Source: Glycera tridactyla
Lineage: Eukaryota
Direction of reading: 5' to 3'
DNA: 64,000 bases
NCBI GenBank assembly: GCA_965644265.1
Contig: OZ286464.1
Location: forward strand, 88,536,001-88,600,000
Under the pieces are notes generated by a model. The model was not told the DNA's origin. It saw nothing but the letters and a program-made list of their open reading frames with translations, and did not search any database. A program made the translations under genes and the position numbers. Numbering within the stretch: the stretch's first letter is position 1; each line of letters starts with the position of its first letter. This document shows, in pieces, positions 22,512-26,284 of the stretch.

Positions 22512-23100
22512 TTGAATTGAATTGAACTTTATTTTTTAACTCTCCCAGGGGGAATGCGAGAAAATATATCGCCCCCTCTTCGAGTACAAATAGCATATAC
22601 ATTCATAGATTGCAAGACAGTAGCACATACACAATAAGACAACAGTATAACAGATAAATACAATTTCGTTACTATCCGTAAAGAATCTTTTCAAGTGGAT
22701 ACTTACCTTTAGTATAGATCGTTAGGTTCCCGATTAGGCTATTGAGACGCATTACCAAGGTCATTGGTCCTCTTGTCTTCTGGCAGAAGAATTTCAGCCT
22801 TCCTTGTAATACTTTGGTGCTATGCTTGGATAGTAGACTGAATAGCTGTAGTTGTAGTGATCAGGATGGTGTGCCCATACCTAGGCTGAGATGGTCTTGA
22901 AGGCATTCACCGTAATGTAATGGTTCCTGGTTGATGCTGAGTCTGGAGCCTGAGACTATGGCCCCTTGTAGTGGTTCCAAGAGATGGCTTCGGCATGCTG
23001 TCACCACATATATGTGCATCTCCACACAGATGGGTACCAAAGTGTGACATGATGGGCGAATTTCACAATCCATGATACAATTGTTTTCGATATATAGAAT
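22512..23100 (-). mobile_element. Possible degenerate LINE 3' end
   Basis: On the minus strand, AATAAAA is followed by a (TTCAA)n tail at 22512-22535. The upstream frame is largely open but has no recognised motif. Confidence 0.35.
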
Positions 23101-25728
23101 GATCGCCTAATAGCTTGAATTTGTCATTCAGTTATGGAAAAGATAACTAAATGAACCACTCTGGCGTGGGATAGCTTTACCTTGACCATGTAGGAACATA
23201 ACGTATGTTATCTTTGACATGGAAGATCTGATAAAATCACTTTGTTTGAATAGAATAAATAACTTTTTTGATATATATCATAATGAACAAGACCGTGCGT
23301 GCTTTCATAGTCAATCTTATGAGTATGACACCATTCTGTCACATGTTTATGATGATATACATAATGCATTTTCTGACGTCAATTTTTGACACATTTTGAA
23401 GTTTCATTACGAGAATAGATTGTGAAATAGCCATGCATTTTCTGCATCATTTCAGAGTATACTTGACAAGCTTCTTTCACAGAAAGTAACATAACTGATG
23501 GGAACCACTTCTGTCACCACATAAGTGGCTTTTACATGACATATGTTATTATGGACATGTCAATCATAACGTCTGTTATGAAGGTCATGAAATTACTACT
23601 TCTCACTTTCAATAAAGATTCAGTAGGGTCTGTGTCATACAAGGTGGGTCTAGTTATCAATAATTTCCCATCATTAGTCTGGCTCACTCTATTAGATTTT
23701 ACATGATAAGAATTCTCCAAACAGACGTTATGTTGGACAGTCAATAATAACGCCTGTTATGTCCAAAGGCATATAGCCAGTCTTTCAGTCATATAAATAT
23801 CACTAATTGTGCCTGTATCGATATAGCATAACTGAAAATAGTGAACTGGGATGTTTCTTGAATTGCAGTACTGCAGCTTATCATGGATAGGGATTTTTGT
23901 AACAGGTGTGACATTGACCACATTGCAAAGATGTCCTGTCATAACCTATGTTACTAAATATTATAATTGTCATGTTTGAATGACTCCACAAAGGACTTCA
24001 AGCCATCAATGTTCTCACCAGGTCGAGCTGCATTCATCATAAGAGAATATGACAATTTAATACTGATAGGACTGCTCAAAGGGTATACATTCATAACAGA
24101 CGTTATTTTGACCAGCTGTCCATGAGTAACACCTGTTACATAGAAGTACCATAATGACTCCAATATTAGGAATAGGTATGAGGTCCTTCAATCCCTGTCA
24201 AGCGTTTCTCAATGCCTGTCATTTATGGTGTATTACTGAATGAAAATCATTGTATTTCTGACAAAATGTCATATCTGGGGTAACAGACGTTACTCAGCGT
24301 AACAGGTGTTATGCTATACAGGAGCCATTGACGGAAAATTTATGTCAGTTTTGAATACACTCTCATTACCATGTTTACCATGTTTGTGCCAGGGTAGTAT
24401 CATTTTTGGGCACATATAGAAGTAAGCTATCAATAGTTGCCACTGCATAATATTCATACAAACTGCCACAAGACTGCAGGCCTTACTTTGAATCGATCTA
24501 TAACAGACGTTATGCTTGAAAAATTGATGGAAATCTATCTCATCCCATTTGACATGGAGTATGAATACTGTGGTATCCTGAATCGTCCTGTGGATTTATG
24601 ACCATGTCGACAGGCATAATATGGACGATTCCTGTCCATATCCTTACCAGATTATGATCGGAATCCTATCTGACAGCTGTACCGACATATCAAATTGTTT
24701 GACGGAATGTCATAACGTCCGTTATGCTTGATTATTTTGATCTAATTTAACCACAAAGTGTAATTTTCAGATAAAACAATATATCTATTCTGTAGTAAAT
24801 GTACCAAGTGTAATTCAGATGATTCAGAATATCTTTATTGTCCAGGGGGCTGGGTCCTGATATCCTGAAATTAGGGTGTCTGGTATGTCACACCTTTGAT
24901 GCCTGAAGATGGACCCTTTTCAAGAGAAGAAATAGTATTTATCTCCAAATATCCATGACATCATCATGAAACTATCTCTGTTATCTCCCATGTAGATAAG
25001 TAGACCAGTTGGAAAATGAGCTTTGCATATTGGACCCATTAGTGTGGAACCGCACATAACAGTTTCGGTCAGATGTTATGTCATCCTGCATGCAAGGCGA
25101 TATACAGCAGTCTATTTTTAAGGATGCCTGCCTTGCAGGCATCCTTCTTCTTACCACTCTCGTTTGGGACTGCAGTTTAGATGACAAAAAATGGAACAAA
25201 TTTCAACATTTTTTTTGGGTAGTAGATTTGAAAGTGATAAACTGCTCCGATTTCCATGAAATCTTGTATGGTTGTTGTTTCCAGTTTTGATAGCTTGTCC
25301 ATGGGCTGTACTAGATGGCTCCGGATTGTTTCGGTGGTAGGTTTTACGCAGTCATAGATTTACTTGAAATTGACTACCATAGCTGCATATGCTGTCTAGA
25401 GGATCACCATGATCATGTTAGATAGTTAGATGTGTGCATCGAAACTGTCAGCCACTCCCACTTGACAACCTTCCAGGTTCCCCATCATCTTGTGTTAAGG
25501 GTTTGTATAAGTCTTTCATTGTGTAGCTTTCATTGACCAGAAACACGCGGGATACATAATCCTCTGAGTTTATACATGCCGTTAGATCTCAACCAAACCA
25601 AACCACGTATTTTCGTGCAAATGCCACTTTCACAAGTTTTCTTTAACGATTCATTCCTCATGACTGCCGTACGGGATATCATTTCAACAGTTCGTTCAGA
25701 TGTTCTGAGACTTGATCATAATCATGTC

Positions 25729-25790
25729 GCATCATCTGTCTTCTGATTTCTAAAGCATATACGCTTTAGAAATCAGAAGACAGATGATGC
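25729..25790. repeat. Perfect 28-bp inverted repeat with 6-nt loop
   Basis: GCATCATCTGTCTTCTGATTTCTAAAGC-ATATAC-GCTTTAGAAATCAGAAGACAGATGATGC. Confidence 0.95.
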
Positions 25791-26175: not shown

Positions 26176-26240
26176 CAAGAAGCTGTCACAGACAGTGTAT
26201 CCCTCGCCATGGGTGCTTTTTCACAAAGGGCAATAACTCG

Positions 26241-26284
<44 letters not shown>

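Follow-up and report, generated by a model that had tools for sequence, protein, structure and literature searches.

A non-autonomous DNA transposon of Glycera tridactyla with a phased array of oriented and conserved dyad sites

A 64,000-nucleotide stretch of the Glycera tridactyla genome (GenBank assembly GCA_965644265.1, contig OZ286464.1, positions 88,536,001 to 88,600,000 of the forward strand), referred to here as the window, contains a cluster of short dyads of the form RTAAC-N4-GTTAY. The question raised by this locus is why so many copies of one motif are found together, and what might read them. The cluster is part of a mobile element. It is a previously unrecognised non-autonomous cut-and-paste (class II) DNA transposon with terminal inverted repeats (TIRs), and an array of 13-14 oriented sites covers 1.5 kb of this 2-kb element. 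The coordinates of its features are presented in Table 1.

The pattern RTAACNNNNGTTAY has ten exact matches in the window, with the positions and spacers given in a first-pass annotation of this DNA. All ten fall between 23198 and 24725, in agreement with the claim that the motif occurs nowhere else in the window. This is far beyond chance: the expectation from dinucleotide-preserving shuffles is 0.19 exact dyads per whole window, and none of 100 shuffles contained ten or more, the maximum being two. When one mismatch is allowed, matches at 23536 and 23899 are gained inside the cluster, while the remainder of the window contains five scattered, unrelated matches. In an alignment of 27 full-length copies of the element (mean identity to the majority consensus 0.89), the site at 23536 proves to be a thirteenth member of the series, with one mismatch in the window copy but exact in the family consensus. 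The two copies originally described as imperfect, at 23718 (CAAAC arm, CAAACAGACGTTAT) and 23899 (GTGAC arm), are genuine members as well; they are imperfect in 27 of 27 aligned copies, yet highly conserved. The family consensus has 11 exact dyads and these two constitutively imperfect ones, and a degenerate fourteenth site is found at about 23371-23395.

The surrounding DNA was at first described as otherwise unique. This description does not hold, since the whole stretch is a dispersed repeat. Positions 23100-24800, compared with the animal's own 2.04-Gb assembly, gave 259 internal candidates, and the 40 that were scored are 83-94% identical over the full length and located on many contigs. 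A 26-base pattern of the left end has 141 matches in the genome with at most three mismatches, compared with 0 for the reversed control, and the right-end pattern has 139, compared with 1. The copies lie on more than 20 contigs and their number is roughly 150-250. In the alignment of copies with their flanks, the homology is sharply bounded at 23014 and 25055 in all of them. The ends GTGCATCTCCACACAGATGGGT and ACCCATCAGTGTGAAACTGCAC, in inverted orientation, match at 17 of 22 positions and form an imperfect 22-bp TIR; the end sequence of the element begins GTGCATCTCC.

Of 35 independent copies, 24 have a perfect 4-bp target-site duplication (TSD), and in nine more the two sides differ at a single base. 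The perfect duplications are ATAT (12), TTAT (6), AAAT (1), ATAA (1) and four others, and the target logo is W-T-A-T. The informative duplicated tetramers include ATCA, CTAT, AGGG, ATGA and AAAT. Tetramers such as ATCA, CTAT and AGGG fix the boundary of the element at the G of GTGCA, so that a reading of the ends with TA or with TG..CA is excluded. No open reading frame (ORF) longer than 70 amino acids is present inside the window copy, and no Rfam covariance model matches inside 23014-25055 at E <= 0.1.

The sites have a definite anatomy. On one side of each dyad there is a box, TTGACA, TTGGACA or TTGACC, which gives the dyad an orientation and extends the site to about 24 bp. Read in the orientation of the box, the motif is RTAAC-A-K-R-Y-GTTAY, with A as the first central base in 300 of 337 site instances; the asymmetric core in both orientations that had been noticed earlier is therefore real. 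The extended dyad is a 16-bp palindrome, CATAAC-N4-GTTATG. The half-sites of 4-5 bp are separated by about 9 bp from centre to centre, and the box would provide a third contact 2-4 bp outside. The layout consists of four face-to-face pairs with a palindromic centre, one tandem pair, and three single sites at 23198, 24500 and 24712. The modules resemble each other over 50-70 bp; for example, consensus positions 512-581 match 695-762 at 74% in a self-comparison with small-word BLAST. The distances between the centres of successive sites or modules are 187, 180, 182, 187, 189, 181, 211 and 212 bp. This corresponds to a coefficient of variation of 0.068, an evenness that was not reached once in 200,000 random placements, so the spacing that was initially called irregular is in fact regular.

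It is important to compare the variation inside the sites with that in the rest of the element. The first-pass annotation had considered that the copies of a transposon might not conserve the dyads preferentially, and here they do. The dyad arms agree with the consensus in 94.3% of alignment cells compared with 88.7% elsewhere, and the dyad is intact in 77% of site instances compared with 45% for pattern-matched random 14-mers; the observed mean was reached in 0 of 20,000 resamples. The site at consensus position 1093 (module 4) has conservation rank 95 among 2,093 14-mers.

The variants were divided into private ones, which are found in one copy and arose after its insertion, and shared ones, which are found in two or more copies and arose in the replicating lineage. 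The counts were restricted to columns without CpG and with few gaps. The TAAC/GTTA cores contain 2 shared and 45 private variants, the 10-bp box 16 and 49, and the rest of the element 757 and 840 (Fisher p = 1.5e-10 for the cores and 3e-4 for the box, both compared with the rest). Shared variants in the cores are depleted about 20-fold relative to private ones. The four central bases and the outer R and Y positions vary at the background level. Private variants amount to 0.48 per column in the cores and 0.52 elsewhere, while columns with any shared variant make up 9.6% of the core and 40% elsewhere. Shared variants are scarcest in the 14-mers of the module centres, boxes and dyads, which come ahead of the left terminal repeat.

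The equal private rate in the cores and elsewhere indicates that the sites are neither unusually stable to mutation nor conserved by the host once a copy has been inserted. The sites decay neutrally after insertion but are held constant in the replicating lineage. From the deficit of shared variants in the cores it follows that lineages which had lost the sites made no further copies. This is the signature expected of a cis-acting element required for the propagation of the transposon.

Table 1. Position, strand and supporting evidence of the features of the transposon copy in the window
Feature	Position	Strand	Evidence or remark
Whole non-autonomous TIR transposon copy, 2,042 bp	23014..25055	+	homology to other copies starts and stops there
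Left TSD, ATAT	23010..23013	.	faces ATAA here, 1 mismatch
Left TIR, GTGCATCTCCACACAGATGGGT	23014..23035	+	alignment of copies and end-pattern matches
Subterminal GTGTGACAT box	23042..23050	+	among the 14-mers poorest in shared variants (consensus 23-36)
Site 1: dyad ATAACGTATGTTAT and box cTTTGACATg	23198..23221	+	box 14-mer without shared variants
Degenerate site GACGTcAAT and TTTGACAC, filling the ~185-bp phase between sites 1 and 2	23371..23395	+	read from the sequence; post hoc, weaker than the others
Module 1: facing sites 23536-23549 (+) and 23566-23579 (-), palindromic centre GGACATGTCAAT	23536..23579	.	centre 14-mer with 0 shared variants
Module 2: sites 23718-23731 (+, CAAAC arm in all copies) and 23747-23760 (-) around GGACAGTCAAT	23718..23760	.	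pattern scan, consensus
Module 3: sites 23899-23912 (+, GTGAC arm in all copies) and 23941-23954 (-)	23899..23954	.	pattern scan, consensus
Module 4: sites 24093-24106 (+) and 24126-24139 (-) around TTGACCAGCTGTCC	24093..24139	.	pattern scan, consensus
Module 5: tandem sites 24280-24293 and 24299-24312, both +	24280..24312	+	pattern scan, consensus
Site 12: ATAACAGACGTTAT and weak box	24500..24523	+	intact in 23/27 copies
Site 13: ATAACGTCCGTTAT, box upstream	24702..24725	-	intact in 23/27 copies
Inverted partner of the subterminal GTGTGACAT box	24885..24893	-	among the 14-mers poorest in shared variants (consensus 1883-1896)
Right TIR, ACCCATTAGTGTGGAACCGCAC	25034..25055	+	alignment of copies and end-pattern matches
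Right TSD, ATAA	25056..25059	.	comparison of 4-bp flanks

Relatives of the element contain the same sites in different numbers. In a subfamily of 12 copies, an extra 616 bp after position ~100 brings three more site-plus-box units in the same phase, and a 1.67-kb relative has five sites. At locus L051 (G000 C17:108100772-108101291), 12 tandem 46-bp units, each with the dyad-like ATAACGGACGTGAT, lie in a related element that also has this left end; outside this tandem the exact 14-mer has only 4 further occurrences genome-wide. The site is what the members of this small group of elements, all with the same ends, have in common. Some copies have been shortened by about one period. In L011, L014 and L015 (consensus ~756-983), 180-204 bp are deleted and module 3 is gone. 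At least two of these deletions are independent, and their breakpoints are located in unrelated sequence and not in the dyads. The remaining modules are left in normal phase, at 156 bp compared with the usual 152.

A rearranged locus of a different kind is found at G000 C4:130450892-130494253, where the right-end ~300 bp of the family occurs 18 times head-to-tail with a period of ~2,400-2,450 bp. This period is ~300-400 bp longer than one element; a single left end (at most two mismatches) is present at the start of the array, and the exact CATAACAGACGTTAT is absent from its interior. The array is either a macrosatellite composed of the element and extra DNA, or a transposon multimer. Two further features are located downstream of the element in the window itself. 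At 25729-25790, 0.7 kb away, there is a 62-bp near-perfect palindrome with 31-nt arms, 97% complementary and without a loop; its Rfam matches are only sub-threshold and generic miRNA-precursor ones (30 bits compared with gathering scores of 50-75). A compound (CG)n(CA)n microsatellite occupies 26236-26282.

The superfamily may be Sola1, a suggestion that comes from the target preference alone. As summarised in PMC3845634 (after Bao et al. 2009), a 4-bp TSD with the target AWWT is a hallmark of Sola1. The present element resembles Sola1 in its 4-bp TSD and A/T-rich target, with ATAT the commonest. It differs in that no Sola transposase was linked to the family in the loci read and in that the TTAT targets fall outside AWWT. 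Among the perfect duplications, ATAT (12) and AAAT (1) fit AWWT, while TTAT (6), ATAA (1) and the four others do not.

Other assignments were tried and rejected. Tc1/mariner, with its TA target, was the first guess from eight copies, but 35 copies show 4-bp duplications such as ATCA, AGGG and ATGA. Ginger1 and Ginger2 have TGT..ACA termini, and the target of Ginger2 is TATA (PMC3845634). In the present family the target is ATAT, and the base before GTGCA (T, A, G or C) varies with the TSD, which means that the T is not part of the element. The long terminal direct repeats (LTDRs) of KolobokP are ~450 or ~660 bp in length with RR..YY termini and 3-5-bp TSDs (PMC9587614), whereas this element is 2.0-2.1 kb with GT..AC termini and is not a solo LTDR of that kind. 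A reading as a solo long terminal repeat (LTR) was considered for L036, which has two direct left ends 5.7 kb apart with ORFs resembling reverse transcriptase (RT) between them. It was dropped because the second copy belongs to an exact 211-bp duplication, flank included, around a nested retroelement. The duplication itself (G000 C1:109539143-109539353 and 109544830-109545040) consists of 185 bp of flank and the first 26 bp of a transposon copy, and between its two halves lie ~5.5 kb in which ORFs resemble RT/RNase H. Either a retroelement has apparently inserted into the terminal repeat and left a duplication of unusual length, or the assembly is at fault here.

The search for an autonomous partner covered left-end matches without an internal match (L036-L048), the long copies L011, L013, L037 and L048, and the subfamily with the extra 616 bp (L049-L054), to the exclusion of four end-to-end pairs of 4-8 kb. 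No transposase was found in the 54 loci read, and no pair of full elements flanking an internal region was seen. In every long copy read, the extra length was due to nested LINE (long interspersed element) or LTR insertions rather than to a partner. The nested repeats in the long loci include LINE endonuclease, RT and RNase H, an LTR-type RT and an env-like ORF. In L041 (3855-7070, minus strand; G000 C18 near 67.386 Mb) an open frame of 1,071 amino acids has a weak match to a Baculovirus-F-type envelope protein (E = 1.5e-5); it is located in a ~17-kb insertion that splits another transposon copy. Among the contigs listed, no other array of the exact main site was present. The exact ATAACGTACGTTAT occurs at 22 isolated sites compared with 25 for the reversed control, and those that could be placed are site 1 of family copies. 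Apart from the local 46-bp tandem of ATAACGGACGTGAT, neither of these two exact patterns revealed a second kind of array. Of the public sequencing runs, a single small one contains 22% of the words, and there is no RNA run among them.

These observations allow us to propose a function. With somewhat better than even confidence, we regard the dyads as cis-acting protein-binding sites of a non-coding transposon, which would be bound by the transposase or by a DNA-binding accessory protein of the autonomous partner. A non-coding element would be under selection only for its mobilisation and transmission, so that its sites are most likely bound by the protein that moves it. This protein could occupy both half-sites as a dimer and touch the box as well, and with many molecules loaded along its length by the array the element might be mobilised more readily in trans. 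The spacing of the half-sites, the variable central bases and the outer contact resemble the footprint usually left by a dimeric protein of the helix-turn-helix type that has an additional domain. The first-pass annotation had listed transposase sites inside an unrecognised element among its possibilities, and this is the best fit now that a transposon with TIRs and TSDs, and with cores constant between subfamilies, has been found; the identity of the binder is our conjecture. Its alternative of a homotypic cluster for a dimeric protein agrees with the anatomy of the sites, but not as a host regulatory cluster in unique DNA.

Several points weigh against a binder encoded by the transposon system. 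The loci read yielded no transposase or other protein that could be linked to the family, and binding to the sites is itself an inference. The sites extend over three quarters of the element at nucleosome-like spacing, unlike the subterminal clusters of Ac/Ds and En/Spm, and such a spread would be just as compatible with a chromatin or architectural factor of the host. The likeness between the TIR and the internal sites is weak, being limited to ACAGAYG in the TIR and to the GTGACAT and TTGACAT boxes. The second commonest target, TTAT, is not AWWT. In addition, the 27 aligned copies are the best-scoring ones and therefore a non-random sample of the family.

The main rival is that a protein of the host binds the sites, be it an insulator, architectural or homeodomain-type factor or a binder of linker DNA, and that the transposon lineage keeps them for the sake of expression, chromatin state, targeting or transmission, in the manner of the Su(Hw) sites of gypsy. 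We consider this unlikely. The signature of selection shows that the element needs its sites and is silent on who binds them, and the ~185-bp phasing is close to the nucleosome repeat length. The majority flank in box orientation, TGATTGACAG, presumably resembles a PBX-MEIS composite site; each column of this flank consensus is supported by only 4-6 of 13 sites, and we take it as a lead only. On the other hand, the neutral rate of private mutation in the sites shows that they are not conserved by the host, and the exact 15-mer CATAACAGACGTTAT, among the matches listed, occurs in the spacings typical of the family, with no sign of a host regulon. A more specific proposal begins from the giant Sola1 transposon of Ectocarpus (Sola1-1_Ec32), which carries a ParB-like accessory gene (PMC12477816). 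By analogy, the array could be a loading platform, like bacterial parS, for a dedicated DNA-binding accessory protein whose gene would lie on a giant Sola1 transposon in this genome, a proposal that we regard as quite doubtful. The 2-kb family may in that case be a stripped-down parasite consisting almost only of loading sites, one per nucleosome repeat. If this were true, animals would share a transposon accessory system that has so far been described in algae only and whose protein attaches to, and marks, the element it belongs to; the DNA target of the accessory protein would be supplied, and a poorly understood superfamily would be tied to a concrete sequence.

The array could also be a passive relic of an old ~185-bp tandem repeat, in which the dyad is merely the slowest part to decay and has no function. 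The modules are evenly spaced, the two-site modules are mutually alike over 50-70 bp, and the relative with the young 12 x 46-bp tandem on a dyad-like site shows that tandem amplification occurs in this group. However, the consensus with its sites masked has no autocorrelation peak near 185 bp, TRF reports no repeat of this period in the consensus, and its small-word self-comparison recovers the modules alone. The eight intervening segments, compared in both orientations, reach a maximum score of 15, equal to the null maximum, with means of 10.1 compared with 9.4 for the null. They do not align with each other, as a decayed tandem repeat would, and no pair scores above the shuffled controls, which bears out the original impression that they are dissimilar. 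An intrinsically low mutation rate is ruled out as well, since the private variants of the cores equal the background. The array may plausibly have arisen in tandem, but it would then be old enough for everything except the sites to have been randomised, and their survival needs selection. The passive reading is already largely refuted by the deficit of shared variants, and we consider it very unlikely. A role for structure, either as DNA cruciforms or hairpins in replication or transposition or as RNA hairpins feeding small-RNA pathways, would agree with the four modules that are imperfect palindromes of 44-56 bp, and three of the five module stretches do fold better than shuffles (z -2.9 to -3.3). 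The energies are nevertheless small (-4 to -9 kcal/mol), the folds differ between modules, and two modules fold no better than shuffles. Moreover, the spacers of paired sites are not complementary (ATAC/AGAC, AGAC/AGGT, AGGT/ATAC) and vary between subfamilies at the background rate, three sites are single, one pair is tandem, and no Rfam family matches; a structural function is highly improbable. The dyads might instead be targets of a site-specific recombinase or homing-type nuclease of the autonomous partner, yielding deletions, inversions and tandem multimers, an idea akin to the directional recombination sites separating cassettes of the first-pass annotation. The targets of tyrosine recombinases (lox, FRT, dif) have inverted arms of 11-13 bp and an asymmetric spacer of 6-8 bp, with rearrangements ending in the spacer. 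The present sites are semi-palindromic 14-16-mers with a 4-bp centre in an element that makes 4-bp duplications, and one locus has 18 head-to-tail right-end repeats with a ~2.42-kb period; a precedent is KolobokP, in which a transposase occurs with an I-PpoI-like nuclease and multimers are formed (PMC9587614). Yet the arms of 5-6 bp and the spacer of 4 bp are shorter than in lox/FRT-type sites, the deletion breakpoints among the 27 copies lie outside the dyads, and no inversion between oppositely oriented sites is present in them. The tyrosine-recombinase target was rejected on the arms, the spacer and the breakpoints. The defining features of KolobokP are also lacking and the tandem array does not contain the exact main site, so that only a very slight chance is left for this explanation.

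What was a motif cluster is now a defined transposon family, in which nothing internal is conserved except about 13 phased and oriented 24-bp sites. For annotation, this means that a family of ~150-250 copies, together with at least two related subfamilies, should be masked and not read as regulatory DNA. Since selection acts on a non-coding element only through its movement, the difference in shared as against private variation would mark the nucleotides read by the mobilising machinery, namely TAAC, GTTA and the TTGACA box. The 24-bp site is a ready DNA probe for the binding protein, and the array offers a natural experiment on spacing by one nucleosome repeat.

It is useful to compare the array with known systems. 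The 12-bp motifs of En/Spm bound by TnpA and the AAACGG hexamers of Ac/Ds form subterminal arrays that are required in cis and are retained by non-autonomous derivatives. The present array resembles them in having many short motif copies in both orientations, often as inverted pairs, inside a TIR transposon. However, the arrays of En/Spm and Ac/Ds are located within ~200-300 bp of the ends with irregular close spacing, while here 13-14 sites extend over 1.5 kb in a phase of ~185 bp. The superfamilies also differ: CACTA elements have a 3-bp TSD and CACTA ends and hAT elements an 8-bp TSD, compared with the 4-bp TSD and the GTGCA...TGCAC ends of this element. The solo LTDR of KolobokP is likewise a TIR-bounded non-coding unit with 3-5-bp TSDs and abundant solo copies in invertebrates, and one multimer locus is present here; the difference is that an LTDR-INT-LTDR copy was not seen for this family and that the element is 2 kb in length. 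The gypsy LTR retroelement carries an array of about 12 Su(Hw) sites in a compact region of ~340 bp, which binds a host zinc-finger protein. Both are homotypic arrays of about a dozen sites inside a mobile element and are kept by the element, but the gypsy array is compact, whereas the spacing here is nucleosome-like. A transposon with internal repeats of a binding site is thus of a known kind, and what is unusual in this family is the ~185-bp phase over most of the element, with unrelated DNA between the sites and selection at the level of the lineage.

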